Source: Amphiscolops sp. MND2022 (Eukaryota). Taken from it: a stretch of DNA of 64,000 nt. Within the stretch, counting starts at the first letter, position 1, and every line of letters starts with the position of its first letter. The position numbers were made by a program, and so were the translations under genes. The stretch is taken from the NCBI GenBank assembly GCA_964187785.1, contig OZ076418.1, positions 12,276,001 through 12,340,000 on the forward strand, in the 5' to 3' direction. The notes under the pieces are model-generated. The model ran no database searches. It saw only the letters and a program-made list of their open reading frames with translations, and had not been told where the DNA came from. Positions 1 through 63,559 of the stretch are shown here, piece by piece.

Positions 1-454
1 ATTTGTTGATGCTCAACTACAATGAGCAGATGAGGCAAGAGAAAGATGAACACTTCTCAGCGAAGGGATAACAAACGTTCTTCGTTATCGTTGGACAACT
101 TACTTCGGCGTCTGAAAAGAGAATCCCAGAGAAACGTTCTTGCAGGATATACGTTGTAATAAAACAATTGACGGATGCGATTTAGGAATTCAAGCAGAAC
201 TTGAATCAGTTCTGCAGGTGACCTGGGAGTGTAATTGTTGCTCCAATGCTTCGAACTATTGTTACTGATGACAACTTGTCAAATGGCTGTTTTGTTTGCG
301 AGTTGTGGGGCCACAGCGAGGAAGATTCAGTAAATTTTCGAAGCGATACGTCGAGGACGAGTTGAAACTGAGTCATCGTAATGCAAAAGAGCTATTGGAG
401 AGTGATGTACAAAAGGAACGAAGGATGGACTTTGATTTTAGGATAACATCGAGA

Positions 455-3105
455 CAAGACGTGAGTGAGCCGCTGAGTATAACGTTGCAAGTTCTTACTC
501 GGAGTTAGGAGGTGAGCTGCTTTTTTAATGAGATGTTTTTATAATTGATTCTTTCGATGATTTGATGGAGTACTTGCCGTCAGTAGTAGTTCTGATTCTC
601 TCTTGTAGACTATTGTTATGACTATAATGGTGAGTTTTCCTTTTTATTTTAGTGGATGGCAGAGTTGATTGGGAGAGGGGGTGATGTTATTCTAACACAG
701 TTAGAACTGATGGAACAGGCTTATGGCTCCTTGTCCGTCTTTGCTAAACGTGAGGTCAATGTCTCGTCGGAGCTGGGGGAATGCGAGTATGTGATAAACT
801 TCCTTTCAAATCAGAACTTTATGGTTCTGGATGAGTTGGAAACAATTGGTCCCTTTTTGCCCTAACTTGTGTATTTGTAAAGATTCTTCTTGTGTGCTTG
901 TATCGAAAAGGCTCCAAGAAAGAGAAGGGAGCAATTAAAGAGAAGATGTTTTCAAGGGTGCCAGACCTTCAAGCAGTTGCTGTAGTATACGAGAAAATCA
1001 AGGAACTCTGCAACCGAGATGTCACGGAGAAGTTTTTGACGTTGAAAGAACTCAAATGTTTCAATTTTTTGACCCTCGCCTTCAATTTGAATGAACGACA
1101 CGGACCATTAATAGATGATTTGACATGGGAGGCAGTTGACCAAATAAAGGATAGTGGTGTCATTGATTGCAAGGAGCATAAAACTGGTCATTTTTTCAAT
1201 ATGAAGTTAAAAATCCACATAGAACAGTTTCCCTGGCTGGAGCGCCTGAAAGAAGAATCTATTTCAAAGCATGGGCCGAATAAAACAAGAGTTTTTGGGA
1301 CGTACAAAGACACGGAAGAACATTCAATGTCCAAAATCATCAAGGAGGTACTTCCCAAACATTTTGATGACCTTTCGATTTTTAACAATGATTTTAATGG
1401 TAATTCCATACGTAAGATGTGGGAAACACGTGTATTATAACAAAGGCACAATGAGTGCAGATCAGGTTTCATTCCATAAGTCTCAAAGCGCCCACGGACC
1501 AGCTACTGCTGGTAATCATTATGTCAACTTTCCGAAACCAAGCGAAGACGTCATTGACTTTTACCACAATACGTTGCAAAGAGAAGTCAATAAGTTAAAA
1601 GGAGGACCTGCAGAAAGTTCATCGTGTCCCGGAACCCCTAGTGAATCGAAGTCTGTTTCAAAAACAGAGACTCCAGTTGCTTCAACGTCTGTCAGCGACC
1701 GCAAGAAAGTGAGAATGACCTTTACTACTTCTTCCTTGTGTCACGTAAATGTATCATCTTGAAAGAACATAAGATAATCAATCGAATCTTATTACAAGTT
1801 TCATTTATTACAAATTATCATCAATTTTTCTCACCAATTGGCTCTTTTTCCTTCAACCCCCCCCCCCAACACGCTGTGAACACCAATTTTTTACCTAATG
1901 AAATGTGTTCAATTGTAACTTTTAATTGATTTTCAAACAAATAAGGCACTGTATTTTGCTGACACCTCAAAAAATGCATAAAATGCTATCTTTTTGGCAT
2001 TATTTTCTAATATTTCATCAGTGTTTGTCATGTGTGGGGGAGGGGGAAGGAAAAAGTTCCCACAAGTTAATGTATTGTAGTAGATAATAGTAATTGGTCT
2101 GATAAAGTTGTTTTTTTTTCACAGGCACGAAAAGAAGTCCAATCGACGCCAAAATCGGCACAACAAAGCACAACAGCAGTTCTGAAAACACCTCGCCCGA
2201 AGATTTCCAGTGATGTTTCCATCAAAAGCAAGCGGAAGAAATTCTCAGAGAGTTCCAGTGATTCATTCCACCCAGATGATGACAACAGCTCGTCTGCGGC
2301 ATCGCCTACACCTAGTAAAAATAGTGCCAATAGAAACAAAGCAATCTCTATCGATAGAAAGAAATTCATTGAGACCCTTACCAAGTGGAAGAAACGTACT
2401 CCCACACAAGCAGATAAAGCATTGAAGCTGTTCACTGGTCTGCAGCTCATCGTGAAGAAAAAGTACGCCATCCGTCAGATTCGAGATGCTGGAATAAAGC
2501 TCACTGTCCAGCAAGAAATTTGATTTATTCAAAAATCAAGTGGGCTTGCTTTTCTCACCTACCAAAAAGTGGCCAATCATGATGAGTTTCTGGGATGAAT
2601 ATTGATAACAAGTTTTTTGGACGAAACTTGGTTGTTTTTGTTGTTGTTTGCAGCATTGTTGAATGTTTTTGTTCATGTTTTTAGAACCGACCAAATATGT
2701 TTTTGGCATTGTTATTTTTGAAACTTTGAAAGATTTGGAGATTGAAGATAATTTCTTTAGTCTCAAGCCGTTTTTCGTAAAGCAGTTTTTGGCTGACTGA
2801 GATAGAAGAATATGTACTTGTTGTATTTTACTGTTTGACGGAATAAGCAGTTTCGAGAAAATATTTGTTCGGATTGATATTTGTTTTAGTATGTCTTTAC
2901 AATCTTCGAGCAAAGTCAGAAAAAGGATTTTTTTTTCAGAAATGCTGAATATTTTTGTGGAGCAAAATGTGTGTGTGAACAACACCGGTTTTTCAAAAGG
3001 TCTGTCCGGGACGTGTCAAGAAGAAAAAAAACAGCTCAAATTCAGAAAAACAACTTCATGGAGACTAAATTGAAGGAACTGAAACAGCAGAGTGAATCAA
3101 ATCTT
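455..3105 (+). repeat. Copy 1 of a ~2.95-kb tandem segmental unit (tyrosine recombinase element body)
   Basis: Aligns by eye to 3408-6066 at an offset of ~2953 bp. It starts at CAAGAC|GTGAGT and breaks off after GAGTGAATCAAATCTT at 3105. Confidence 0.9.
892..1708 (+). pseudogene. Tyrosine recombinase catalytic exon, frameshifted copy
   Basis: Same sequence as 3845-4663 but lacks 2 nt at ~1427 (GAAAC-ACGTG vs GAAACTTACGTG). The product is split into ORFs 892..1440 and 1271..1762. Confidence 0.75.
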
Positions 3106-3272
3106 GGCTAGTAGTAGTCCCACCGCCGTTGAACAAAAAATGAAAGTTAGAAATTTTGTTCAGTTTCTGGGGGCGCAAAGTTTTTGGGCTGGGTAGCTGG
3201 GAAATTTTTGAGATAGCGGGGTGCTGAAAGTGAAACTTCAATCGGGTTGTTTTCAGAGCGCATTGAATAAAT

Positions 3273-3818
3273 ATGGCGGGTGTCCCAGTGATAGATCCTG
3301 CAGATGGTGTTTGGAACACTCTTTTTATCCATCAGGAAGTTTCGGAATTGGCAGCCTTAGCTAAAGAATTACGAAAGCCGATGTTACGATTGGCGGCAGC
3401 GGTTCCGCAAGACGTGAGTGAGCCGCTGAGTATAACGTTGCAAGTTCTTACTCGGAGTTAGGAGGTGAGCTGCTTTTTTAATGAGATGTTTTTATAATCA
3501 ATTCTTTCGATGATTTGATGGAGTACTTGCCGTCAGGAGTAGTTCTGATTCTCTCTTGTAGACTATTGTTATGACTATAATGGTGAGTTTTCCTTTTTAT
3601 TTTAGTGGATGGCAGAGTTGATTGGGAGAGGGGGTGATGTTATTCTAACACAGTTAGAACTGATGGAACAGGATTATGGCTCCTTGTCCGTCTTTGCTAA
3701 ACGTGAGGTCAATGTCTCGTGGGAGCTGGGGGAATGCGAGTATCTGATAAACTTCCTTTTAAATCAGAACTTTATGGTTCTGGATGAGTTAGAAACAATT
3801 GGTCCCTTTTTGCCCTAA
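3273..3818 (+). CDS. Small two-exon hypothetical protein (~117 aa; exons 3273-3413 and 3606-3818) at the 5' end of the recombinase unit
   Basis: ATG in context AAATATGG; phase-0 donor GAC|GTGAGT; phase-0 acceptor TTTTATTTTTAG|TGG; open to TAA 3818. The second exon is conserved in copy 1 (653-865). No recognisable domain. Confidence 0.45.
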
Positions 3819-3844
3819 CTTGTGTATTTGTAAATATTGTTCTT

Positions 3845-4663
3845 GTGTGCTTGTATCGAAAAGGCTCCAAGAAAGAGAAGGGAGCAATTAAAGAGAAGAT
3901 GTTTTCAAGGGTGCCAGACCTTCAAGCAGTTGCTGTAGTATACGAGAAAATCAAGGAACTCTGCAACCGAGATGTCACGGAGAAGTTTTTGACGTTGAAA
4001 GAACTCAAATGTTTCAATTTTTTGACCCTCGCCTTCAATTTGAATGAACGACACGGACCATTAATAGATGATTTGACATGGGAGGCAGTTGACCAAATAA
4101 AGGATAGTGGGGTCATTGGTTGCAATGAGCATAAAACTGGTCATTTTCTCAATATGAAGTTAAAAAGCCACATAGAACAGTTTCCCTGGCTGGAGCGCCT
4201 GAAAGAAGAATCTATTTCAAAGCATGGGCCGATAAAAACAAGAGTTTTTGGGACGTACACAGACACGGAAGAACATTCAATGTCCAAAATCAACAAGGAG
4301 GTACTTCCGAAACATTTTGATGACCTTTCGATTATTAACGATGATTTTAATAGTAATTCCATACGTAAGATGTGGGAAACTTACGTGTATTATAACAAAG
4401 GCACAATGAGTGCAGATCAGGTTTCATTCCATAAGTCTCAAAGCGCCCACGGACCAGCTACTGCTGAGAATCATTATGTCATCTTTCCGAAACCAAGCGA
4501 AGACGTCATTGACTTTTACCACAATACGTTGCAAAGAGAAGTCAATGAGTTAAAAGGAGGACCTGCAGAAAGTTCATCGTGTCCCGGAACCCCTAGTGAA
4601 TCGAAGTCTGTTTCAAAAACAGAGACTCCAGTTGCTTCAACGTCTGTCACAGACCGCAAGAAA
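3845..4663 (+). CDS. Tyrosine recombinase (phage-integrase fold, Crypton-like) catalytic exon, intact copy
   Basis: Catalytic motifs occur in canonical order: NERHG (R, 4049), EHKT (K, 4133), NSIRK (xxxR, 4364), SAH (H, 4448) and NHY (Y, 4475). H-to-Y spacing is 9 residues, as in lambda Int H333/Y342. There is an in-phase donor AAA|GTGAGA at 4663/4664. The true start is uncertain (ATG of MFSRVP or an upstream splice). Confidence 0.75.
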
Positions 4664-5902
4664 GTGAGAATGATCTATACTACTTCTTCCTTGTGTCACG
4701 TAAATGTAACATCTTAAAAGAAAACATAAGATAATCAATCGAATCTTATTACAAGTTTATCATCAATTTTTCTCACAAGTTGGATCTTTTTCCTTCAACC
4801 CCCCCCCCCCCCCCAACACGCTGTGAACGCCAATTTTTTACCTAATGAAATGTGTTCAATTGTAACTTTTAATTGATTTTCAAACAAATAAGGCACTGTA
4901 TTTTGCTGACACCTCAAAAAAATGCATAAAATGCTATCTTTTTGGCATTATTTTCTAATATTTCATTAGTGTTTGTCATGTGTGGGGGAGGGGGAAAGAA
5001 AAAGTTCCCACTAGTTAATGTATTGTAGTAGATAATAGTAACTGGTCTGATAAAGTTTTTTTTCACAGGCACGAAAAGAAGTCCAATATTCGACGCCAAA
5101 ATCGGCACAACAAAGCACAACAGCAGTTCTGAAAACACCTCGCCCGAAGACTTCCAGTGATGTTTCCATCAAAAGCAAGAGGAAGAAGAAATTGTCAGAG
5201 AGTTCCAGTGATTCATTCCACCCAGATGATGACCACAGCTCGTCTGCGGCATCGCCTACTCCAGGTAAAAATAGTGCCAATAGTAACAAAGCAGGCTCTA
5301 TCGATAGAAAGAAATTCATTGAGACCCTTACCAACTTGACAGTGGAAGAAACGTACTCCCACACAAGCAGAAGAAGCATTGAAGCTGTTCACTGGTCTGC
5401 AGCTCATCGTGGAGAAAAAGGACGCCATCCGCCAGATTCGAGATGCTGGAATAAAGCTCACTATCCAGCAAGAAAATTTGATTTATTTAAAAATCAAGTG
5501 GGCTTGCTTTTCTCACCTACCAAAAAGTGGCCAATTATGATGAGTTTCTGGGATGAATAATGATAACAAGTTTCTTGGACAAAACTTGGTTGTTTTTGTT
5601 GTTGTTTGCAGCATTGTTGAATGTTTTTTTTTGGTATTTTTAGAACCGACCAAATATGTTTTTGGCATTGTTATTTTTGAAACTTTGAAAGATTTGGAGA
5701 TTGAAGATAATTCCTTTAGTCTCAAGCCGTTTTTCGTATAGCAGTTTTTGGCTGACTGAGAAAGAAGAATATGTACCTGTTGTATTTTACTGTTTGACGG
5801 AATAAGCAGTCTCGAGAAAATATTTGTTCGGATTGATATTTGTTTTAGTATGTCTTTACAATCTTCGAGCAAAATCAGAAAAAAAGTAATTTTTTTTCAG
5901 GA

Positions 5903-6160
5903 ATGCTGAAATTTTTTGTGGAGCAAAATGTGTGTGTGAACAACACCGGTTTTTCAAAAGGTCTGTCTGGGACGTATCAAGAAGAAAAAACAGCTCAAAT
6001 TCGGAAACACAACTTCATGGAGACTAAATTGAAGGAACTGAAACAGCAGAGTGAATCGAATCTTTTTGACGACAGCTATGGGGACGGCAGAGGCTTGAAC
6101 ATTGAAAGACTCTGGCGGTATCATTCACTCTTGGATGGACCAGAAGTGTGCTGTGGATAA
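5903..6160 (+). CDS. Hypothetical short ORF or exon in the repeat unit (also at 7335-7592)
   Basis: Preceded by a TTTTTTTTCAG acceptor-like site and open in two copies. No recognisable domain. Confidence 0.25.
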   Translation: MLKFFVEQNVCVNNTGFSKGLSGTYQEEKTAQIRKHNFMETKLKELKQQSESNLFDDSYGDGRGLNIERLWRYHSLLDGPEVCCG

Positions 6161-6385
6161 CTGTTCTGCTGTGGTACAGTGAATTCACTCAATAATTTCC
6201 ATTCATCTTATACCCCAGAAGCGATGCAAATCAGAATCATATATACACCACATGATTTGTCGTGTACTTGCTGGCAATGATGTACGGAATTTTGCAATCA
6301 ACAATCAAAAATACTGCTGTTGGGACGAACAACGCAGGGCTTAAACGTGTGTTTCTGGAACGAATACCAAAAGACGTTGAATGAT

Positions 6386-7818
6386 GCATTATTTTCTAAT
6401 ATTTCATTAGTGTTTGTCATGTGTGGGGGAGGGGGAAGGAAAAATTCCCACAAGTTAATGTATTGTAGTAGATAATAGTAACTGGTCTGATAAAGTTTTT
6501 TTTCACAGGCACGAAAAGAAGTCCAATATTCGACGCCAAAATCGGCACAACAAAGCACAACAGCAGTTCTGAAAACACCTCGCCCGAAGACTTCCAGTGA
6601 TGTTTCCATCAAAAGCAAGAGGAAGAAGAAATTGTCAGAGAGTTCCAGTGATTCATTCCACCCAGATGATGACAACAGCTCGTCTGCGGCATCGCCTACT
6701 CCTAGTAAAAATAGTGCCAATAGTAACAAAGCAAGCTCTATCGATAGAAAGAAATTCATTGAGACCCTTACCAAGTGGAAGAAACGTACTCCCACACAAG
6801 CAGAAGAAGAAGCATGGAAGCTGTTCACTGGTCTGCAGCTCATCGTGAAGAAAAAGGACGCCATCCGCCAGATTCGAGATGCTGGAATAAAGCTCACTGT
6901 CCAGCAAGAAAAATTGATTTATTCAAAAATCAAGTGGGCTTGCTTTTCTCACCTACCAAAAAGTGGCCAATCATGATGAGTTTCTGGGATGAATATTGAT
7001 AACAAGTTTCTTGGACAAAACTTGGTTGTTTTTGTTGTTGTTTGCAGCATTGTTGAATGTTTTTGTTCGTATTTTTAGAACCGACCAAATATGTTTTTGG
7101 CATTATTTTTGAAACTTTGAACGATTTGGAGATTGAAGATAATTCCTTTAGTCTCAAGCCGTTTTTCGTATAGCAGTTTTTGGCTGACTGAGAAAGAAGA
7201 ATATGTACCTGTTGTATTTTACTGTTTGACGGAATAAGCAGTCTCGAGAAAATATTTGTTCGGATTGATATTTGTTTTAGTATGTCTTTACAATCTTCGA
7301 GCAAAATCAGAAAAAAAGTAATTTTTTTTCAGGAATGCTGAAATTTTTTGTGGAGCAAAATGTGTGTGTGAACAACACCGGTTTTTCAAAAGGTCTGTCT
7401 GGGACGTATCAAGAAGAAAAAACAGCTCAAATTCGGAAAAACAACTTCATGGAGACTAAATTGAAGGAACTGAAACAGCAGAGTGAATCAAATCTTTTTG
7501 ACGAAAGCTATGGGGACGGCAGAAGCTTGAACATTGAAAGACTCTGGCGGTATCATTCACTCTTGGATGGACCAGAAGTGTGCTGTGGATAACTGTTCTG
7601 CTGTGGTACAGTGAATTGACTCAATAATTTCCATTCATCTTATACCCCAGAAGCGATGCAAATCAGAATCATATATACACCACATGATTTGTCGTGTACT
7701 TGCTGGCAATGATGTACGGAATTTTGCAATCAACAATCAAAAATACTGCTGTTGGGACGAAAAACGCAGGGTTTAAATGTGTGTTTCTGGAACGAATACC
7801 AAAAGACGTTGAATGATG
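6386..7818 (+). repeat. Copy 3: head-to-tail duplication of the 3' ~1.44 kb of the unit
   Basis: Matches 4945-6385. The ORFs at 5903 and 7335 are near-identical (offset 1432). The junction reads GAATGATGC|ATTATTTTC. Confidence 0.9.
6509..6976 (+). CDS. Putative last exon of the recombinase gene: S/K-rich linker plus small helical (Myb/SANT-like?) C-terminal domain
   Basis: Acceptor TTTTTTTCACAG|GCA is in phase 0 with the donor at 4663. The frame is open to TGA 6976 (ARKEVQYSTPK...EEEAWKLF...IYSKIKW). The homologous exons at 2125 and 5069 differ by several 3-nt indels plus one frameshift each. Confidence 0.5.
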   Translation, partial: ARKEVQYSTPKSAQQSTTAVLKTPRPKTSSDVSIKSKRKKKLSESSSDSFHPDDDNSSSAASPTPSKNSANSNKASSIDRKKFIETLTKWKKRTPTQAEEEAWKLFTGLQLIVKKKDAIRQIRDAGIKLTVQQEKLIYSKIKWACFSHLPKSGQS

Positions 7819-8752
7819 CTACTGGGACGAAAGAAGCTCAAAGGATTTCGATGATGTGTTTTCCTGGAACGAATATGTGTTCTAAGGTTATTTACATTTT
7901 CTTATTGTTCTTGTTGTGGATTCACAGCTTCCACTTTTCATTTTGCAGGGTTGGAAAATTTCAAAACATATTTGAAACTACGAGATTTTGACGAAAACTC
8001 TTCGATATCAGAAATGGGCTGACTTTGGCACATTACCTCAGAGTATTTTCCCATAAAAACCATGGGACTTATTCTTAATGTTTCCATCCATCTTCCACAT
8101 TTTTCAGCTGGAATCGAAAAGATATTCGGCACATTGCTAGTTCCATCATTGCAAAAACAGTTCAAAACACCTCTTCAGTAATGAAAATCAATTCATAACG
8201 AACAAATTTGAATTTTTTTCCAACCCCGTCTTTTTGTTCAAATATATATCAAATTCTCCTCAACTTTTCCTTGCCATTCGCCTTTAGCTGCTCCACTTTA
8301 GCTTCTGCAAAAAAGGGCAAAGGGTTAGACAAGGAACCAACACCGTTGCTTAACAAGAATAATTACTGTGTCATTTCAATGATTTGGGAGCTGTCGTACT
8401 TATAAAGCCCACCCAAACTAGTCCCTCAGAAGCGCAAAACGCTACTACTCTTTTGATTGCAAGGCGCCAGTAGTTGTACGCAATGCGCCATTTCGGTCTC
8501 GCAAATCGCCAGTAGTGCAAATCGCCAGCAAAAAGCGCCATTTTTCTTTGGTTTTGATTGTTGACCTAATAGTTTATTTTATTGTCTTTGCAAAATCACC
8601 AAAGTGCTTTTTAATCATTCCAAACAAGTTCCCCGAACTATCTGAGGCATTTGCGTGAGTGCGAACGTTAAAATTTTGCATTTAAGAGAGATATAATCGA
8701 AAAATCACACACAGCGCCAGTTCCGGAGGTACGCGAAACGCCCGAGCGCAGA

Positions 8753-8774
8753 AGTAGTAGTAGTAGTAGTAGTA
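8753..8774 (+). repeat. (AGT/TAG)n microsatellite, ~7 units
   Basis: AGTAGTAGTAGTAGTAGTAGTA is directly visible. Confidence 0.9.
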
Positions 8775-9107
8775 TACTTCGTGGGGCGCTGACGGCTCCT
8801 ATGGCTGCCCTCAGCGACCGAGGCCCATTGAGCATAGGACCCCGCAGCGCCCGATTTTCAACCCCGGCTTGTAGAGGCCGCCTATCGATACCGCAGTTAT
8901 AATAGATGCTACAGCATTCAAATACAAGCTCCCAAAAAAATCAGGCCATTCCAGTTCGGTCTAAGACAAAAACGCGGGCATATGTAGTAAGGGTTCCAAA
9001 AAATACTACGTGCGGGCGTACACGGCGTTTCGATTACTACGTGCGGGCGATGACGGAATTTTTTAGTTCTGATGTTTTTAAAATATTTTTAAAGCCTTTA
9101 AATCGCT

Positions 9108-9668
9108 TTTTAGTCGGCGCTTTTCGAAGAAAAACGCAGACTATAGTAGTGACTTTTTTTTAAGACCAACGAACTGACAGATTTTATAAAGAGTTATAAA
9201 TAGCTGAGCTGACTTACAGTAACTGCACTAACAGTAACCGCAACGCTAGCTATCACTGCTAGCACTTGGCATAGAGGTTAATTAGGCTTTTTGAGGTCTG
9301 CCAAGCAGAAGGACGTGGGTTCGAGTCCCGTCCTTGATCAAATTTTTTTGTGCAGGTTTTTTTCGGCTTTGTGAGACTTTTTTCGCAAATTTTTTTAATG
9401 TCTCCGAAGGGTCCACCCTTCATTTTGTTTTCTATTTTGCATAAGAATGGATGTTCAAAACCTCCCAAAGGGCCCCTTTTACAATTTTTTGGCACTATGC
9501 GACTTACCGGAGACCAAAAAATTTCGAAAAAAAAATTCAAAAAAGTTCGGATTTTTTAAAATTTTTCCTCACGCGGGTACTGTAGGAGAGAATACTTGAA
9601 ACTTTGAAGTCTTTTTGCTATTTTTGAGCCTTAGATATGGCGCCGACTCGGGCCGTTCCCGGCTTGTT
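9108..9668 (+). mobile_element. Helentron-associated non-autonomous element (HINE/DINE-1-like)
   Basis: 5' subterminal AGTCGGCGCT and 3' inverted GCGCCGACT, followed by the short hairpin GCCG-TTCC-CGGC and TT/T-rich ends. Dispersed copies occur elsewhere in the window. Confidence 0.6.
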
Positions 9669-9750
9669 TCATTGATGTTGTGATGTTTTAGGATGTTCTA
9701 AGTGGTGTCAGACAGTATTAATAAGTTTCAAACTATATTTAGATTGAAAA

Positions 9751-10269
9751 TTGAAGAACTTGGCTTTGACCCTGTTTGATGAAATCATCAATTCGCTGTC
9801 CCAAATCGACCCGTTTGAAGACCCATTATCCCTTCAAGAGGTATTAGTTGATTGTCAAATTGATGTAGCACAACAAACAAACCCGCCGGAGTCAGAAAAT
9901 TTTCTGGAAACAGGAGTTGATATTGACCAAAATGCCAAAAGTGTCAGTTTTGAAGCGAATTTGGGTGAATTTATCCTTGAAAACGTGCTCCAGGTGGGCT
10001 CCTCTGGTGCCAATCTGGTCCCAGAGGGCTCCACCCATGACGAGAACATCGAAAATCAATCTTCGGATGAAAATAGCTCTCCTGAAACTAATATTAGAAA
10101 CGATATCTACGATGGAAGGGTCAAATGCATCATTTGCACATCAGCCGTTTTGAAGATGAGGAACCATATAAACACGGTTCATAGATGTATAGATGCTCGT
10201 ATTCGGACATACCTCATTGCCTACTACCGCAATCTTGGCAAAAACGATGTCTGGGACTGTCGCAACTGA
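9751..10269 (+). pseudogene. Acidic, C2H2 zinc-finger-containing ORF fragment
   Basis: CIICTSAVLKMRNHINTVH is a C-x2-C-x9-H-x4-H finger after an acidic low-complexity tract. No ATG start; stops on both sides. Confidence 0.4.
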
Positions 10270-10274
10270 GACTC

Positions 10275-10379
10275 CGCTATACCCTTGTCGAGTAGATACA
10301 GAATCAGTCCTGCACTACTTATTCTTTTGCCCCCTGTACGACCAGTTTCGTGCGCCCGAACTTGCCACAGGAAACATCT
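10275..10379 (+). mobile_element. LINE ORF2 C-terminal zinc-knuckle fragment
   Basis: PCRVDTESVLHYLFFCPLYDQFR resembles the C..ET..H.LF.CP.Y...R motif at the end of LINE ORF2. Confidence 0.5.
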
Positions 10380-10615
10380 AGTTGGCTAGATTTTATAAAA
10401 CAATTTTAACGCAAAATGTGTCAGCCAATCAGAACGCTCGTTAGTTAGCGTAAGTCCACACCCAAACGAGGTCCGAAAAAATTTCAAAACTTTTATTTTC
10501 GATGCTGATTACAACGCACCAAACCCGAGCTCGATCGGAGCTGTGTACGTGAAGTTGACTTTTTGACTTTCCCTCAAGAAAGTAAGGTCGAGCTATCTTA
10601 GAAAAATTTCAACAT

Positions 10616-10940
10616 TGTAAATTGTGTATATTTCCCTTTGGAAATTCAATGTATATTTCCCTGTGGAAATTCTCTCCGAATTCAATCTGATCCAAACGAG
10701 ATTTTTAACAGAAAGAGATTCAATTAATGCTAGAAGAACGGAACAATCAGAGTTAAAATGTGGGAACTAGCTAATCTGAATGGTTGAAAACAAAACCAAA
10801 GAATTTTACCGCACAAACGTGTGAACAAAAATCAAACTTCATACGTGAAACAATATGATTAGTTGCATGAACAGCATGGCAACGTGTCAGATAAACATGT
10901 CTAGAATAAAATTGAACAAACAGAAATTTTGGCGTTAACA
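10616..10940 (-). repeat. 3' LTR of BEL/Pao element 1
   Basis: Direct repeat of 17156-17478 with about 10 substitutions and one 2-bp indel by eye (~96-97%). PPT GGGGCGGAGTA lies immediately upstream on the minus strand. Confidence 0.95.
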
Positions 10941-11011
10941 TACTCCGCCCCTTGGACTATCAGTTCAATATAAATGGTCTCAATATATATATGGTCTTTC
11001 AGAGTGTGAAA

Positions 11012-11809
11012 ATGCGATCAACCAGATCACAAGCTGTGCGTCCGAGTGGCGATGACGCCTTGCGTGAGCTCTTCACAGAGGTGGAGAAGGGGGCGGTAAG
11101 GAGCAAGCGCGTGTCAAGGGGGGCCGGACCATCGGAGATCGTCGTCGGCGAGCCCTGCGTGGTGTCCTCATCTGTGGTGACGCCCAGGGACGGGCCACTG
11201 GACTTGTCTCTGTCCCCAGATGAATACCAGCAGCGATATCCATGGAATGACCACCCAGTCACGGGAACCTGCAGCCGAAAGGAAGACTTCTCGTTTGGGA
11301 GCATCTGCTACGAGTGGGTACGGCCAGACGGGACAGACGATTTCTTCCGCTGCAGTTGGGAACGGGGGGCGCCAGTGAAGCCTTCAATGCTCCTCACAGT
11401 CGGCAAGAGCTGCAGGGGTTTTCACCAGGATCTGGATCCCCCATACGACCAGATCAACACGGTCGTGGGAGGGAAGAAACTGTGGCTCTTCACTCAACCA
11501 AGGAGCCGAGTGACCACACGAGTGATTCGAGGTGGCTGGGCTTCGACCGTGTGGGAAGTGCTCGGTTGTATGAAGGACCACAAGGAAAGCCATCTCATCA
11601 GCTATGGCGTGCAGTCTGCTGGTGAGAGTGTGTACGTTCCTTAGGGATGGGGTCATGCTGTCGTCACCGACACCGATGACAAGTGCTGCCTGCAGATCGT
11701 GGAGTTTGCTTGCCAGCAGTCGGAGTTGGATTTCCACTACGGTCGTCTGCGGGACCATGCCTCGGTGGGGGTTCGCAGAGGGGACGTGGTGAGTGCGACG
11801 TCATTATGA
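11012..11809 (+). CDS. JmjC-domain Fe(II)/2-oxoglutarate oxygenase (~265 codons, one in-frame TAG at 11642-11644), antisense within the BEL/Pao element
   Basis: GFHQD (HxD, H at 11423), QINTVVGGKKLWLF, QSAGESVYVP*GWGHAVVT (distal H at 11654). The frame continues past the TAG to TGA 11809. Confidence 0.8.
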
Positions 11810-11869
11810 CTAGGAGGTAAGATAAGTCATTTCATAACTTCATTGCATGTAAACTAATTGATATGTCAA

Positions 11870-12790
11870 TCAGTTATGTTGAGAATTAGGCAGAGGCAAT
11901 TTTCTGAGCTTTCTCACTGGTCGTGTGAACTTCCGGCCGTTCATAACAACTTCCACGACCCGAACAAGCCCATCATTTCCCTTGAAGGTGTTGGTAACCT
12001 TCGCCAATGGCCACTGTAAAGGTTTCTGATTTTCCTCGGCGACATACACAACATCACCAATTTCAAGATTGCGAGCTGGGTATTGCCATTTGGACCGTAT
12101 CTGATGCCTCAGCAGGTACTCCTTCATCCATCGTCTCCAAAAATGCTGCTTCAGGGAGCACACTTCGAAATTCTCAAGTGACATTGATTTTTCGGGTATG
12201 AAAGTTAGTGGGCCTCCTATGAGGAAGTGTCCGGGCGTCAGAATGTCACCATCACTAGGGTCGTCAACCAGGGCTGTCAGGGGCCTGGAATTCAAGAGCG
12301 CTTTGATCTGGATCAGCATGGTTGACAGTTGTTCGTATGTAAGAATGATGTTCCCCATCAACTTCCTCAGAATGGTTTTCGTACTTTTGATTCCTGCTTC
12401 CCAGAGACCTCCGAAGTTGGGTGCTCGGGGTGGAATGGTGACCCAATTGATTGCCTGGTTTTCAAGATATGCTGTGATATCACTGAGATTCGTCTTGTTG
12501 CTCCAGAACTCTTGTATTTCTAATAATTCATTTCTGGACCCCAGAAAGTTTGTGGCGTTGTCGCTGAAGATTGTCTTCGGGATTCCTCGTCGACCGATGA
12601 ATCGCTTCAAGGCAGCGATGCAGGCATCTGTGGTAAGCTCTGACACAAGCTCTATATGAATTGCTCTGGTAGCAAAGCAAATAAGCAATGCAACGTAGGC
12701 CTTGTCAGTTTTGTTTGGCCCGACTCGTATTGTGAGAGGTCCGGCAAAGTCTATCCCTGTATTGGTGAACGGTCTTGCTGGAGTGATCCG
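11870..12790 (-). CDS. BEL/Pao integrase core and C-terminal domain (frameshifted from the upstream pol segment)
   Basis: TGIDFAGP, ICFATRAIHIELV, SDNATNF, APNFGGLWEAGIKS, LTPGHFLIG and WPLAKV...DGLVRVV motifs. Confidence 0.95.
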   Translation of the reverse strand, partial: RITPARPFTNTGIDFAGPLTIRVGPNKTDKAYVALLICFATRAIHIELVSELTTDACIAALKRFIGRRGIPKTIFSDNATNFLGSRNELLEIQEFWSNKTNLSDITAYLENQAINWVTIPPRAPNFGGLWEAGIKSTKTILRKLMGNIILTYEQLSTMLIQIKALLNSRPLTALVDDPSDGDILTPGHFLIGGPLTFIPEKSMSLENFEVCSLKQHFWRRWMKEYLLRHQIRSKWQYPARNLEIGDVVYVAEENQKPLQWPLAKVTNTFKGNDGLVRVVEVVMNGRKFTRPVRKLRKLPLPNSQHN

Positions 12791-15093
12791 TTCCTCGGGT
12801 AAGTCTCTCCCATTTGCTGTTCAACAGCTTTACTGTTGAATCGGAAGCATTTGATGCAGTTTCGTATGTTATTCTTGACTTTCACTCGAGCGCGGAGAAT
12901 CCAAGATTTTTGCTGAAGATGGAACAAAAATTGTTGTTGACCCGAGTGCAGTGTTTCTTCATGCGCCTCGTGGATCAATAGCCTTGCCAGTGGAGTGTCG
13001 CCATCCAGGAGAATGGGGAATTTCTTGCTGTAAGGGTAGTTGGACTGAGATAACCTCCCCCCAACACGAAGAAGACCTGTGCTATCTTCAATGAAAGGAT
13101 TCAAACTCCGAATTTTGCTAACTCTAGTCAATTCCTGGTTTTTCTGCATCCTTTCTAGCTCGGATTGAAACGAATTAGCTTGTTCGCTTGTCAGGATCTC
13201 AATACGAGCTTGTTCGATATCGTCAATCGATCGGGGAGCACACTTAGAAAATTTTCCCTCTTTGAAAATTTCAATCGCCTTCCGAACAAGTGCAAATGTA
13301 CGAAAGAGTCGTTTCGATGAGGAGAATCTAGTAATCTGGATTACCTCTGAAGGGAGCGTAGAAGGCATCGAGAGCACTTGCTTGTTCTGCTTGACCTCCA
13401 AGTCGGTCTGTTTGGAGATTTGTTGCTGCTTGGGCCAATTTGTAGAGTCTTGAGACAGCCAAGTCGGACCGTTCCACCACAATCGGAAATCCTTGAGGCT
13501 CGGTATGTCCAACCCACGTGAGGCACAATCGGCTGGGTTGTCAGCAGTTCCAACGTGGTTCCATTGATTAGGCGGTAAGACTTCTTGAATTTGTGAAACT
13601 CTGTTGGCGACGAAGCAGTTCCATCGTCTCGGCAAACTTGAGATCCATGCTAATACTATTGTAGAATCTGTCCAAGCGACCCTGCTGTTGATGACGAATC
13701 CACCTCGTTCCAAGGCAATGCTGGTGGCCTTCATCAACTTGCTAGCTAGTAGAGCTGCACACAACTCCAGTCGAGGCAGACTAACTGATTTTACTGGAGC
13801 GACTCTTGTCTTTGCTGCGAGCAACTTTGTTTCAATGCTATCACTGGTTGTGATTCGGGCGTAGATGGCCGTGGCATAGGCACTCTCTGAAGCGTCTGCG
13901 AAGACATGTAGCTGGATTTCTTCCTTCCGGTGATAGGACACTTGTCGAGGAAATCGAATTCCGTGAAGATTCTTGAGTTCTTCGTGAGTAGCTTTCCAGA
14001 TCAAGTCAATATCTGGAGGAATGGGCTCGTCCCACTTCAAACCTCGTGTCCAGGTGCTCTGCATCAGAATCTTCAACTTGATTGTACAGGGTGATAGCCA
14101 GCTCATAGGATCAAAAACTTTAGCAATTTCGGAGAGTAAGATTCGCTTCGTTGAACCGTTTTTGTACATTCCTCGATATTGGAAATTTAATGTGTCGCTG
14201 CTGGGACACCACGCAACTCCGAGTGTTTTGATTGTGTAGTCATCCTTCTGAAGGTCTAGAACGGCCTTGGTTTCACGGAGAGCTTCAGGTAGGTCTTCCA
14301 CAACTTGGGGAGCACACGATGACCATTTTCGCAATGGAAGTCCGAATTCATTCAAATGCTTTAATAGTTTTTCTTGCAGTGTCTTGGCTTCCTCTACTGA
14401 TTCTGCACCAGTAAGAAGATCATCTACGTAGAAATCGTTCAAAATAGGTCCTTTAACATCTGGGTCAGTTGAGTGATGTCCAGCTTCTTGGAGTGCGCGT
14501 ATTGAGTGAAATGAAGATGAACTGATTCCATACGTCACGCGTTTCATTCTCAGATGAGATACGTCTGTTTGGGATTCAAATTTCCACAGGATCCGGTGGA
14601 AATCTTTCGCGGGAAAATCGAGCTTGATCTGTCTGTACATTTTCTCCACGTCTGCGGACAGAGTCACTGCGTGGACTTGGAAACGCAGGAGAATTCCAAA
14701 GATGTCGTCTTGTATCGTTGGACCAATCATTAGATTCTGGTTTAAGGAACGATTACTCGATGTTTTGGCTGAGCCATCAAATACGACACGCAGCTTTGTG
14801 GTCGTGCTGCTATCTTTCATCACGCAATGATGAGGAAGGTAGTTTGATCGATTGGGTTCTATTGGGATCTCATCAGAAGGGATCATTTTCATGTGATCCA
14901 TTTGGAGGAATTCCTCTATAAAGTCTAAATATTTCTTCTTGAGGTCAGGATTTCTCTCCAGCTTCTTCTCAAGCTGATTGAAGCGCTGTCTGGCTGTGGC
15001 TAGGCTCTCACCTAGGGGTTCTGTATCACGTTTGAAGGGCAAGGAAACCTCCGGTTTCATCTCTTGTCGTAGTTTCCTTGAAGTGATCTTCAC
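12751..15093 (-). CDS. BEL/Pao reverse transcriptase, RNase H and integrase Zn-binding region (780-codon open segment)
   Basis: YLPHH, LRVVFDGS, YVDDLLTG, LHVFADASESAYA, AKTRVAP, LPRLELCAA and H..H...C..C motifs. Confidence 0.95.
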   Translation of the reverse strand: MKITSRKLRQEMKPEVSLPFKRDTEPLGESLATARQRFNQLEKKLERNPDLKKKYLDFIEEFLQMDHMKMIPSDEIPIEPNRSNYLPHHCVMKDSSTTTKLRVVFDGSAKTSSNRSLNQNLMIGPTIQDDIFGILLRFQVHAVTLSADVEKMYRQIKLDFPAKDFHRILWKFESQTDVSHLRMKRVTYGISSSSFHSIRALQEAGHHSTDPDVKGPILNDFYVDDLLTGAESVEEAKTLQEKLLKHLNEFGLPLRKWSSCAPQVVEDLPEALRETKAVLDLQKDDYTIKTLGVAWCPSSDTLNFQYRGMYKNGSTKRILLSEIAKVFDPMSWLSPCTIKLKILMQSTWTRGLKWDEPIPPDIDLIWKATHEELKNLHGIRFPRQVSYHRKEEIQLHVFADASESAYATAIYARITTSDSIETKLLAAKTRVAPVKSVSLPRLELCAALLASKLMKATSIALERGGFVINSRVAWTDSTIVLAWISSLPRRWNCFVANRVSQIQEVLPPNQWNHVGTADNPADCASRGLDIPSLKDFRLWWNGPTWLSQDSTNWPKQQQISKQTDLEVKQNKQVLSMPSTLPSEVIQITRFSSSKRLFRTFALVRKAIEIFKEGKFSKCAPRSIDDIEQARIEILTSEQANSFQSELERMQKNQELTRVSKIRSLNPFIEDSTGLLRVGGRLSQSNYPYSKKFPILLDGDTPLARLLIHEAHEETLHSGQQQFLFHLQQKSWILRARVKVKNNIRNCIKCFRFNSKAVEQQMGETYPRNGSLQQDRSPIQG

Positions 15094-17081
15094 AATCGAT
15101 TTCTTCTTGACTATATTTCATAGCAGCAGGGAGTTCTTCCAGCTCCCAGAAGCGAGAGAGCTGGGCGTCTGTAGAAACGTGATGAGATCTCACTTGACTC
15201 GAAGGAATCTTCGTTTGACCTGTCACTACCCATCCGAAAACAGTGTCTTCCAGAAAAAAGTTTTCATTTTCCTGAATCTTCCCTCCAAGTGTGAACTTCT
15301 CTGTGACATCCGCTCCGGGGAGGACGTCAATTGACGACGGTTCATTGAATCGAGGATCGGCTAGTTTCAAATTTGCAAGATTCTTGAATTGCGATTGAGG
15401 CACTGGAGATGAGGGTAGGTTGTTTGTGATCTTCGTGAGGACGAAAGCCTTCACAATGACTATTCTCTGCTTGACGATAACTGGTATGTCGACAGTGGCT
15501 CGAGATTTGACCTGGTTTTCACTTCCAAGGCCGTTAATCTCCATGTAGTTGCGTTTCTTCGAAAGACCAAGTGTTTGAACACATGATTCAGTGATACAAC
15601 TGATTTCTGATCCTGAGTCGAAAAATGCTCGGCAATACACTGAAGTGTTTGCTCGGCTCTGAACTGGTATCATTGCTGTAGGCAGCAAGGTCTGCTTCGA
15701 GAAGGTATGAGAAGAATGGTTACTAACACTTGCCGAACCCCTTGTCTTTGAAGATCTAGATTCATGACCCCGTGGTCTTTGCTGATGAATGAGAGTGTGG
15801 TGTTTGCTGCCACACGTCCGACACTTGTACTGACTCGAACACTCGCTTGCTGTGTGTCCCTTTCTAAGGCAGTTGTAGTAAAAGCCCTTAGATTGCACCA
15901 TCTTGAGTTTGTCTTCTATGATGAGATCGTTGAAGGTTTGGCATGCTTGGATTCTATGATTCTCTCCGCAGCGAAAGCATAACTCTGCCACGCCAGAGTA
16001 CACGCCTGTCTTCGAGGAGTCGTTTTCTAGAGGCCTAGATCCACTGAAACGCCACTGGGAGGACGTCGTTTCGCTGGAATGCTTCGCGGATGCAGGAAGC
16101 ACACTATGAAATTTCTGTGATTTTGACACCTCACATGAACTTTCTAGTGCTCTACATCGTGTCTCAAGGAAGTCCTTGAACTGGTCATACGTTTGTAAAT
16201 CCGATCCAGTAGATGACAATTCCCACTCCTTACGAGTCTCAGGATCTAATTTTTCAGTGACCAAGTGTAGAAGTAGAAAATCACATTCCTTGACGTTGAC
16301 TCCTTGATTTTCCAGAGCTCTTCGATTTTGGTCCAGAATTTCTTGAACGTTTCTCAGTATTCGCACGTTCTCTTGATGACCCTTCGGAATAGACATCATG
16401 GCTTCAATGTGCGCTTTCACCAGTGCTCTCTTATTCTGAAATCTGTCATTGAGAATGTCTCGAGCGATTGCATAATTTGCGTCGGTAACGGTGATCGATG
16501 AAAGCAATCTCGCGGCGTTTCCTTTTAGAGCTGTTTTCAGATAGTGCAATTTCTGCGAATTGGACAAATTTGTGTTATTGTGTACGGAGGATTCAAAAAA
16601 TGTCACGAAATGAAGTCCATTCGAGATAGTTTCCGTCAAAGTTCGCTAACTGCATAGTGGGTAGTTTCAATTTCGCGCTAGACATCATCGGGTTGGCTGT
16701 GGAAGCTGCTTGCACTGAGGCATCCAATGAGGTTTCCTCGAGTCGTCTTCTCATTTGCTTGAGCAAATTTCGTACATCGATAGAATAGCCCGATGCAGCA
16801 TCAACCTCGTTCTCTAGATCCACGTCTTTCACCAGTTCTTCGATTTGCTCGTTCTTCGATTCAACGTCTTTGAGCTTGAGGGTTATTGCTTCCTCCAAAC
16901 GCTCAATCTCTTCTTTCTGTGAAGTAGTCAAGGCATGACCTGGAATACTGAGAAGGGCTTCCGAGGCTCTGGTGAGTCTTGTGATGACTCCTTTGTGCGC
17001 TGATCGCGACTTGTTGAGTCTAGTCAGCTGCTGTTCATCAGTGGTTGATGAACCAGTTTGTGCGCGTTCTGGGCTTGACAT
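15026..17081 (-). pseudogene. BEL/Pao gag plus aspartic protease (frameshift at ~16620)
   Basis: LPTMQLANFDGNYLEW (DUF1759-like gag motif), three Zn knuckles (CFRCGENH..C, NCLRKGH....C, CRTCGSKHHTLIH) and protease FFDSGSEIS. Confidence 0.9.
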
Positions 17082-17155
17082 ATTGAAAGGAATGTCACAG
17101 AGGACGAATTGATCTTCTTTTCCGGTTTCTGTATCCCTGGTGGTCGCGGCACCAA

Positions 17156-17478
17156 TGTAAATTGTGTATATTTCCCTTTGGAAATTCAATGTATATTTCC
17201 CTGTGGAAATTCTCTCTGAATTCAATCTGATTCAAACGAGATTTTCAACAAAGAGATTCAATTAATGCTAGAAGAACGGAACAATCAGAGTTAAAATGAG
17301 GGAACTAGCTAATCTGAATGGTTGAAAACAAAACCAATGAATTTTACCGCACAAAGGTGTGAACAAAAATCAAACATCACACGTGAAACAATATGATTAG
17401 TTGCATGAACAGCATGGCAACGTGTCAGATAAACATGTCTAGAATAAAATTGAACTAAAAGAAATTTTGGCGTTAACA
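17156..17478 (-). repeat. 5' LTR of BEL/Pao element 1
   Basis: Starts TGTTAACG and ends TTTACA on the minus strand. Followed by the PBS TGGTGCCGCGACCA (17154-17141; resembles the complement of a tRNA-His 3' end). Confidence 0.95.
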
Positions 17479-17755
17479 AACATCAAATGTCAAAATTTCA
17501 ACAGCTTCGTTCTCCACTTCTACTGGTCCGATTTAGTTCATTTAAAAAGCAGCGTACTCAGCTTTGAAAGACCTTTCCAACGAGGGGTCGTAGAGAGCTG
17601 TAGCTCACTTGGTGGCTGAGAAATGATTTTTCTCGCTTCTGATTGGCTGAGAGCGGGCGGAGCTGAACGAAAGCGCCAAAATGCAGAAAAAAGTGATTTT
17701 CTTCACGTACAGACCTTATAGCAGCCTAACTTAAACTTTTTCGAGCTCAGCTAAG

Positions 17756-18482
17756 TCGCTGATGAGCTCACGAGGCAGCAAGTTGTTCACTCGAAGGTGG
17801 TTCGGATTACTAGCCGTGCCACAAACCAGCCAACATCTCTGGTCCGGGTCTTCACCACCTCCAGAAGGACAGCTGAGCAAGCCATTGCAGAAGGCATCAA
17901 GCTGGGCTACTACCTACACAGATGCGAGGCACCAAGGGAGAAGCCTGTCGAGGTCAAATAGTGCTTCAAGTGCAACGGGTTCGGGCACCTTGCCAAAGAC
18001 TGCACCCAAGAGCAAGCCTGTGCGCGATGTGGACAACCTGGACACACTCGTGACAAATGCCAAGCAGAGTCCCCGATGTGCTCCAACTGCGGAGAACGAC
18101 ACAGCGCCAAGTACGGGGCTGCAAAACTCGCACCAAGCTGGTCAATGACGAGAGACAGGCCAAACAAGCTCAGATGGCACAGTCAAAACCCACAACTCGA
18201 GCAGAAGTTGAGCAGAAGATGTCTGAGGTCCATGCGAGATGTGGCAACATCGAATCCAAGTGGGAGGCAATGATCAACCAAGTGAACGCCTACCTGATTC
18301 TCGCCTTGCAGTACCTGAGGACTCACATTCCAGGTAGTAGCCTTCAGATGCCAGATTTCAAAACTCATCTTGAAACTCTTGCGCAGAAAATTTTTTGCAT
18401 GAACGTGTCCCTTGACAGATTTGTGCATCTCTCTCCTGAATTCAACGCTTCCTCTGTCTCAAAACTACTTCGGATAAACTGA
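17756..18482 (+). pseudogene. LINE ORF1 (gag-like, three Cys/His knuckles), disrupted
   Basis: CFKCNGFGHLAKDC, CARCGQPGHTRDKC and CSNCGERH. In-frame TAG just before the first knuckle and a frameshift after the third. Confidence 0.85.

Positions 18483-32899: not shown

Positions 32900-63559
<30,660 letters not shown>

Follow-up and report, generated by a model that had tools for sequence, protein, structure and literature searches.

No class of eukaryotic mobile elements is less well understood than the DNA transposons whose only mobility enzyme is a tyrosine recombinase (YR), and the rules by which they choose targets have been established in very few cases. In Cryptons, the YR is the sole mobility enzyme; these elements have no reverse transcriptase (RT), terminal inverted repeats or long terminal repeats (LTRs), some of them contain introns, and they occur at low copy number with a patchy distribution (PMC3212892; PMC9977147). 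The presumed substrate of recombination in Cryptons is a short direct repeat at both ends (Goodwin et al., 2003, as summarized in PMC3212892). Here, we describe a YR locus in 64,000 nucleotides of Amphiscolops sp. MND2022 (assembly GCA_964187785.1, contig OZ076418.1, positions 12,276,001–12,340,000 of the forward strand; this whole stretch is referred to below as the window). We read positions 455–8752 of the window, with a probability of about 0.75, as the decayed copy of a DNA transposon, truncated at its 5′ end and duplicated internally, which belongs to an animal-type family that is apparently undescribed.

The family resembles Cryptons in that a YR is its only mobility enzyme, with no RT, RNase H or DDE transposase in complete units, and in having direct repeats at both ends, which are trinucleotide arrays of two to more than 300 units here compared with 4–6 bp in Cryptons. 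It differs in its protein, which is far larger: SET and two zinc fingers are present, together with a C-terminal domain (CTD) peculiar to the family. Such a domain is missing from animal Cryptons, and fungal ones have GCR1_C. No Pfam match to DUF3504 or GCR1_C was obtained at E ≤ 1 in the open reading frames (ORFs) of the window or in 45 family members. The original prediction, made from the letters of the window, was of a Crypton-like element in a possibly unclassified lineage. The first part holds loosely, in the sense of a YR-only DNA element; a position outside the described Crypton groups agrees both with these negatives and with the family-wide replacement of the His of the HxxR motif by Asn or Thr. 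This separation is made by domain and motif tests.

A second comparison is offered by the YRs of endogenous nimaviruses, which have a C2H2 zinc finger and a SAM-like N-terminal domain, keep five of seven key catalytic residues and are in some cases multi-exon (Kawato et al., 2023; PMC10871703). They are crustacean-associated and integrate into simple repeats, and non-viral YR-like homologs are found in decapods (PMC10871703). As far as descriptions of architecture and behaviour go, the present family shares with them the C2H2, SAM-like and YR combination, five of the seven residues and simple-repeat flanks. The nimaviral enzymes, however, move viral genomes of 200–580 kb, their targets being telomeric (TAACC)n arrays or 28S rDNA, whereas the elements here measure 3–11.5 kb, carry no viral genes, have trinucleotide flanks and often encode a SET domain. 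By analogy, the repeat-specific YRs of endogenous nimaviruses are the closest described counterpart.

DIRS, Ngaro and VIPER also encode a YR within a eukaryotic mobile element, but the RT, RNase H, methyltransferase and inverted or split direct terminal repeats of these groups were not found in complete units of the family. SETMAR, a fusion of a SET domain with a mariner transposase of the DDE type that has been domesticated, is a precedent for a SET histone methyltransferase joined to a transposase, although not with YR chemistry. Dong, Waldo and Mino are microsatellite-specific non-LTR retrotransposons with an endonuclease and an RT; they likewise use microsatellites as a safe-haven niche, but again without YR chemistry. 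No description of a stand-alone, SET-bearing YR transposon flanked by trinucleotide repeats was found by full-text literature searches (Repbase being outside this scope).

A tyrosine recombinase conserved across the family

A word-based search for relatives returned seven; when 1.84 billion representatives were searched exhaustively with a profile, 107 were obtained, 69 of them at E < 1e-10. A family alignment of 45 sequences was used for residue counts and for AlphaFold2. In the intact YR exon of the window, Arg69 lies in NERHG (4049–4051) and Lys97 in HKT (4133–4135), followed by Asn171-x-x-Arg174 (4355–4366), His202 (4448–4450) and Tyr211 (4475–4477), with an H-to-Y spacing of nine. These motifs and this spacing had been recognized in the original prediction, and the residues prove to be near-invariant among the relatives: Lys97, Arg174 and His202 are each kept in 44 of the 45 sequences, and Arg69 and Tyr211 each in 43. 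The stretch His96-Lys97-Thr98-Gly99, the pair Arg174-Lys175 and Thr206 are near-invariant too. Position 171, which corresponds to the His of canonical HxxR, is Asn in 29 sequences, Thr in 14 and His in none of the 45.

AlphaFold2 with a shallow alignment of eight sequences gave a predicted local distance difference test score (pLDDT) of 35; repeated with the 45 sequences, the model of the YR domain reached a pLDDT of 86.6 and a predicted template modelling score of 0.84. In a Foldseek comparison of this model with the PDB, the top 24 matches are all YRs, including XerA, lambda Int, a Staphylococcus integrase, XerH, Tn1549 Int, Flp, Cre and MrpR (probability up to 1.00, E values of 0.07–1, template modelling (TM) scores of 0.36–0.48). 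In BFVD (viral structures), the best among the matches listed are integrases, VLF-1 proteins of nudiviruses and baculoviruses, and unnamed proteins. The fold of the lambda Int/Cre superfamily is therefore recovered by the model and its Foldseek matches, albeit with weak E values. At the sequence level, PF00589 matches four of the 45 members (best E of 1.6e-5) and is the sole Pfam family matching more than one; the match of P0070, at 20.1 bits, lies under the gathering score of 27.1 bits. PHROG integrase families match three and two members (best E of 3.6e-7), and Phage_int_SAM_1 gives weak matches in two members, directly N-terminal of the catalytic domain. Pfam gave no match on the YR ORF of the window. 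Judged by the model and the residues, the identification of this ORF as a YR catalytic domain appears secure.

Full-length relatives and what the window copy lacks

Eleven loci, including L001–L003, L005–L007 and L018–L020, were fetched from one long-read assembly (ERZ25074608), where they lie on different contigs at about 100–216×. L018–L020 form a separate subfamily; further loci were taken from other samples. In L001–L003 and L005–L007, the order of domains is constant: SET, an acidic/tandem-repeat region, two C2H2-like zinc fingers (C-x2-C…M-R-x-H-L-x3-H and then Y-Q-C-x2-C…), a SAM-like domain, YR, linker and CTD. The SET domain is found by Pfam above threshold in several of these loci, and P0151 (1365 amino acids), P0153 and P0155 are intact single-ORF proteins that bear it.

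The homology of the window to the full-length proteins begins sharply at 3853, at residue 626 of P0008, and neither tblastn nor a hidden Markov model (HMM) of the N-terminal domains finds a SET domain, zinc fingers or a SAM-like domain upstream of either YR copy in the window. The HMM finds nothing in 1–3852, and its sole match, at 9748–10266, belongs to a second element described below. The window copies are therefore 5′-truncated, with about 625 N-terminal residues gone. The YR exon of the second copy is 94.5% identical at the nucleotide level to L005 9947–10844, and this identity is confined to 3853–4756.

Between subfamilies, the nonsynonymous divergence (dN) is 0.10–0.35 and synonymous sites are saturated; the ratio of nonsynonymous to synonymous rates (omega) is 0.27 for L001 versus L007, which are on different contigs. 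As read from these comparisons, the family shows long-term purifying selection. For the second unit of the window, omega is 0.57 against L005 and 0.64 against the first unit, values that rest on 20–27 substitutions and are not distinguishable from neutral evolution. This would fit a family whose active lineages have retained function while the copies in the window decay. We also noted that L005 and L001 are 90.6% identical in the 5′ region and only 67% identical in the YR exon, and that L006 and L007 show 86.5% identity in the 5′ half and 72.8% in the YR. Such mosaicism suggests frequent recombination or gene conversion between elements.

The YR exon appears to be joined to a downstream coding block by splicing. 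A donor (AAA/GTGAGA) is present at 4663/4664 and an acceptor ((T)8CACAG/G) at 5068/5069, giving a phase 0 join; the equivalent GT[A/G]AGT and CAG are kept in the paralogs L001, L005, L006 and L007 at about 68% nucleotide identity, and in L001 splicing at these signals restores the reading frame. The segment 4664–5068 is thus a probable spliceosomal intron. In P0008 (1065 amino acids) and P0151, the YR, a Ser/Lys-rich linker and a helical CTD of about 75 residues lie in one uninterrupted ORF, from which it follows that the downstream exon is part of the recombinase gene; as this subfamily is without the intron and the paralogs keep its signals, the intron is subfamily-specific. The intron-linked helical exon of the original prediction thus stands as far as splice signals, phase and paralogs are concerned, but the proposed product (3845–4663 + 6509–6976) mixes repeat units. 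Its second exon comes from the next, partial unit; the cognate exon of 3845–4663 is 5069–5560, which is frameshifted by a 7-nt insertion near 5334.

Mobility and microsatellite boundaries

Clusters formed at 90% identity contain 10–16 family members of varied length, and within one assembly these are spread over separate contigs, 60 kb to 1.1 Mb long. L018, L019 and L020 have a common 11.5-kb block that is 98.8–98.9% identical, and their flanks are unrelated. At the 5′ boundary, each passes from flank to (ATA)13–19 and then to identical element sequence, and at the 3′ boundary element sequence is followed by (ATA)16–23 and then by flank; the ends bear no long terminal repeats but a direct trinucleotide repeat on both sides. 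In the (AGT)n subfamily, the 3′ terminus reads …AACGCC[A/C]GAGCGCAGA immediately before (AGT)n. The final …GAGCGCAGA is identical in the window (8752/8753), in L001 (12529/12530; 343 units) and in L007 (two units), and (TAG)/(GTA) arrays lie ahead of the 5′ ends in L001, L003 and L007.

Four microsatellite-bounded subfamilies can be listed: (AGT)n bounds L001, L003, L007 and the window copy, (ATA)n bounds L018–L020 and L008, and (TCA)n bounds L004. In L004, which comes from another sample and has a YR that is 26% identical, 3.3-kb single-gene units are arranged head-to-tail and separated by (TCA)358, (TCA)67 and (TCA)67. The L004 contig (ERZ25067548, 11,875 bp) comprises three to four such units with (TCA)n between them and was flagged as circular by the assembler; this flag is probably an artefact of the tandem array, although it may reflect an extrachromosomal multimer. 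In a marine-plankton subfamily, the gene is preceded by (ATA)26, a point at which several independent assemblies end. The contigs of P0112, from many marine metagenomes, are collinear and hence give no independent flanks.

Short motifs are arrayed in subterminal positions. Members of the (AGT)n subfamily have [C/G]GCCA[G/T] there, L018 has a repeat of 35 bp, and L021 bears a palindrome-like motif of 18 bp on either side. The ends of L018 read …TGATATTT and AAAATCA… across (ATA)n, an imperfect inverted repeat of 7–8 bp, and elements of the (AGT)n subfamily have GAGCGC[A/C] close to each end, the two occurrences being inverted. Both may be core-type binding arms, or may have arisen by chance in AT-rich sequence.

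No RT, RNase H, DDE, polB or capsid gene was found inside the complete units (3.3 kb in L004 and 11.5 kb in L018–L020), in line with the original description of a eukaryotic YR element devoid of RT, RNase H, polB and capsid genes. A Maverick/Polinton-like neighbour (a double-jelly-roll capsid domain and an rve integrase) was observed at 17960–21446 in L019, just past the 3′ end of the 11.5-kb element (about 17459) and outside the common block. The A1 scans of IMG/VR and JGI metagenomes returned no relatives. Dispersed near-identical copies with sharp ends in microsatellites show that the family is mobile. It is multi-copy and dispersed, and not the single-copy domesticated gene that had been considered as the contrary outcome.

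Organization of the window locus

The region 1–7819 of the window consists of repeats within repeats rather than one simple gene. A segment of about 2.65 kb occurs twice (95.1% identity over 2678 columns), and about 1.44 kb, made up of the tail of the second unit plus 321 bp, is duplicated again in tandem. In each long unit, a YR ORF is followed by a G+T-rich gap and then by a second coding block. The features are as follows.

455–3105 (+): repeat unit X (copy 1), with 5′ segment, YR exon, intron, linker/CTD exon and 3′ region
892–1762 (+): YR catalytic exon, copy 1; a 2-nt indel near 1437 leaves overlapping ORFs 892–1440 and 1271–1762
2125–2579 (+): linker and CTD exon, copy 1; frame change near 2517–2520 (tblastn pieces 2125–2517 and 2520–2579)
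3106–3407: spacer J1, 302 bp, unique (no match in the window or in related loci); contains most of the upstream 'exon 1' of the original prediction
3408–6064 (+): repeat unit X′ (copy 2), 95.1% identical to unit X
3845–4663 (+): YR catalytic exon, copy 2, intact, 273 codons; family homology from 3853
4664–5068 (+): probable spliceosomal intron, 405 nt, phase 0 (GTGAGA…polypyrimidine-CAG)
5069–5560 (+): linker and CTD exon, copy 2; frame broken by 7 inserted nt near 5334 and by an indel of 1 nt near 5473
6386–7819 (+): tandem duplicate of 4945–6385, 97.3% identity
6509–6976 (+): linker and C-terminal helical-domain exon, third copy, the sole intact one; 155 codons, stop at 6974–6976
8429–8752 (+): conserved 3′ terminal region, ending …GAGCGCAGA, with several [C/G]GCCA[G/T] motifs
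8753–8773 (no strand): (AGT)7 microsatellite where two family elements meet; proposed remnant of an attachment site
8774–10378 (+): second family element, 5′ part, 85–88% identical to L001 13559–14499

The family HMM matches both pieces of the first YR exon. The ORF of the second spans 3845–4717, and the donor at 4663 closes the 273-codon exon. The intact exon at 6509–6976 matches the CTD of P0008, L001, L002, L003, L006 and L007. Every copy of the element in the window is broken somewhere, and the internal repeats of 2.95 and 1.44 kb are secondary rearrangements. Only the catalytic and C-terminal parts and the 3′ terminus are left, and the window copy cannot be autonomous: it is not an intact element but a truncated, duplicated and partly frameshifted relic. 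A comparison of 1–454 with spacer J1 found a common part of only 17 residues, which lies within the repeat unit, and an Rfam scan of the window gave no match.

The extra small genes that had been attributed to the element (3273–3413 + 3606–3820, and an 85-amino-acid ORF at 5903–6160) have tblastn homologs in none of 21 related loci. The first exon of the upstream one lies mostly within spacer 3106–3407 and is absent from the other unit; the 85-residue ORF, the sole small ORF scanned, has no Pfam match. We do not consider these small ORFs to be genes of the element. Nor do the indels between copies point to past coding constraint, as had been argued from their often being of 3 nt: five of 18 are multiples of three, which is the level of chance. 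The L018-type element also has accessory ORFs, one with C2H2 and another weakly JmjC-like, neither of them homologous to ORFs of the window; the latter, of 160 amino acids, matches JmjC with an E value of 0.0075.

The terminal region 8429–8752 is 79% identical to L001 12206–12529 and 76% identical to L007 15768–16097, both alignments stopping at the same base before (AGT)n. The (AGT)7 that follows is the sole perfect microsatellite of at least 18 bp in the window, and (AGT)343 occupies the homologous position in L001. Beyond it, the stretches 8774–9110 and 9671–10268 align at 85–88% identity with the 5′ portion of the element that follows in L001, and the zinc-finger ORF at 9705/9751–10269 is recognized by the HMM of the N-terminal domains with an E value of 3e-12. 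As read from these alignments, the locus is the inner part of the first element in a head-to-tail cluster of two, with a putative microsatellite remnant between them.

Other repeats and a BEL/Pao element truncate the second element. It is also interrupted, at about 9357–9668, by a dispersed repeat of about 150–300 bp, which is probably a short interspersed element or a miniature inverted-repeat transposable element; copies with 71–86% identity are found at about 39250–39440, 40597–40750, 44598–44786, 52033–52289 and 53186–53337, and several in L002 and L003. The BEL/Pao LTR retrotransposon, at 10610–17481 (−), is near-complete, with LTRs at 10610–10943 and 17150–17481 that are 95.5% identical and ORF domains DUF1759, Peptidase_A17, RVT_1, Integrase_H2C2, rve and DUF5641. 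Between its LTR and the end of its integrase, on the opposite strand, lies an ORF of 230 amino acids (10952–11644, +) with an H-x-D…GGKKLW stretch that looks cupin/JmjC-like by eye, and for which Pfam gave no match at E ≤ 1. Further retroelement ORFs (RVT_1, Pao peptidase) are located at 20242–21510, 28288–28905 and 46789–48918. The earlier statement that no RT is nearby is accordingly valid for the element itself but not for its surroundings, since the window contains the BEL/Pao retrotransposon and further RT ORFs, which are part of elements of their own. The window is transposon-rich throughout, with no host gene recognized; the host is a marine eukaryote, the elements of which include BEL/Pao, Gypsy-type and Maverick-like ones. 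A run of 168 N at 54085–54252 is an assembly gap or masked.

A proposed mechanism and its alternatives

Strand exchange by tyrosine recombinases takes place in a short stretch whose sequence has to be the same in both partners. We propose that the recombinase would excise or copy the element as a circle, the junction of which would be the trinucleotide repeat. This junction could then recombine with a genomic microsatellite of the same unit, the repeat serving as the crossover region. Insertion would leave microsatellite on both flanks and remake the target beside each copy, and head-to-tail clusters with microsatellites between the elements would arise because each insertion recreates its target; the sharp ends would be accounted for as well. 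The zinc fingers and the SAM-like domain probably recognize the subterminal repeated motifs. We infer the circular intermediate, the crossover within the repeat and the roles of the DNA-binding and SET domains. By analogy, such a mechanism would extend the Crypton model (PMC3212892; PMC9977147) and parallel nimaviral repeat integration (PMC10871703). Whether the family forms a distinct YR DNA transposon lineage at superfamily level, with trinucleotide attachment sites that differ between subfamilies ((AGT)n, (AAT)n or (ATC)n), its own SET methyltransferase and arrays built by re-insertion, is in our estimation an evenly balanced question.

Several observations count against the interpretation of the locus as a relic of such a transposon. 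Searches of PDB sequences with phmmer and hmmsearch and an hhalign comparison of the family profile with Escherichia coli XerC gave nothing significant, and the Foldseek E values are weak (0.07 in the PDB and 0.003 in BFVD, with TM scores of 0.4–0.56). Neither the canonical His of HxxR nor an acidic residue following Arg-I is present, and for this reason the catalytic competence of the family YR is to be regarded as unproven. Microsatellite targeting and the circle are inferred, with no empty site, circular junction or transcript observed. That the window and L001 have the order element/(AGT)n/element in common could stem from orthology, from a duplication or from repeated targeting. No 5′ end was found for the window element, and the interpretation does not account for 3408–3852 and 7820–8428. 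Finally, the family is mosaic, with 5′ halves and YR exons differing strongly in identity within locus pairs, which complicates any simple copy history.

A first alternative is that the family is mobile but that its microsatellites are by-products, for example an element-borne repeat tail or the outcome of a process that resembles retroposition and truncates the 5′ end. Non-LTR retrotransposons indeed typically show simple-repeat tails and 5′ truncation, the window copy is 5′-truncated and the microsatellites range from two to 358 units. Yet repeats flank both sides of the independent L018–L020 insertions as well as the L004 and L001 units, the complete 3.3-kb and 11.5-kb units have no RT, and the element encodes a YR, whose chemistry needs identical sequence in both partners. 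We therefore regard this explanation as unlikely.

The locus might instead belong to a host multigene family, derived from a domesticated recombinase-like gene that was tandemly duplicated and is immobile, the window then containing decaying paralogs. This would agree with the head-to-tail clustering of members, the strong long-term purifying selection and the local gene order common to the window and L001, and the SET fusion recalls domesticated SETMAR. It is difficult to reconcile with three 11.5-kb copies that are 98.8–98.9% identical between sharp ends and unrelated flanks, with 90% clusters of 10–16 often truncated copies on different contigs, with the many frameshifted copies and with termini conserved to the base; moreover, no NCBI or UniRef source was found among the sampled members (20 representatives and cluster members) or in two name-reporting searches. 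A host family is, in our view, quite improbable. A fragment of a DIRS/Ngaro-type retrotransposon or of a nimavirus-like endogenous large DNA virus, which could be evoked from the RTs in the window and from the repeat-inserting YRs with C2H2 and SAM-like domains of endogenous nimaviruses (PMC10871703), is very improbable, since these RTs are on BEL/Pao and other elements, on other strands or at other positions, and are not conserved beside family members, complete units of 3.3–11.5 kb have no viral or RT genes, and the IMG/VR scan is without relatives.

Implications

Among eukaryotic YR-only DNA transposons, activity has been directly observed solely for a Chlamydomonas Crypton, CryptonF-1_cRei (PMC9977147). 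With sharp ends, recent copies, intact proteins of 1000–1365 amino acids and a predicted repeat target, the transposon family described here would make the YR integration mechanism directly testable. The genes are absent from every curated protein source traceable for the sampled matches, and annotation therefore likely misses or mis-calls them; none of the sampled members bears an informative name or accession, one JGI pair being labelled 'hypothetical protein'. If our interpretation is correct, the family would be a small, non-viral counterpart to the nimaviral repeat-specific recombinases and would represent a second, independent fusion of a SET domain with a transposase. On the superfamily-level reading, its enzymes would be natural repeat-directed integrases, and the elements could both seed and expand microsatellites. 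The family also suggests a route for the joint expansion of mobile elements and microsatellites.

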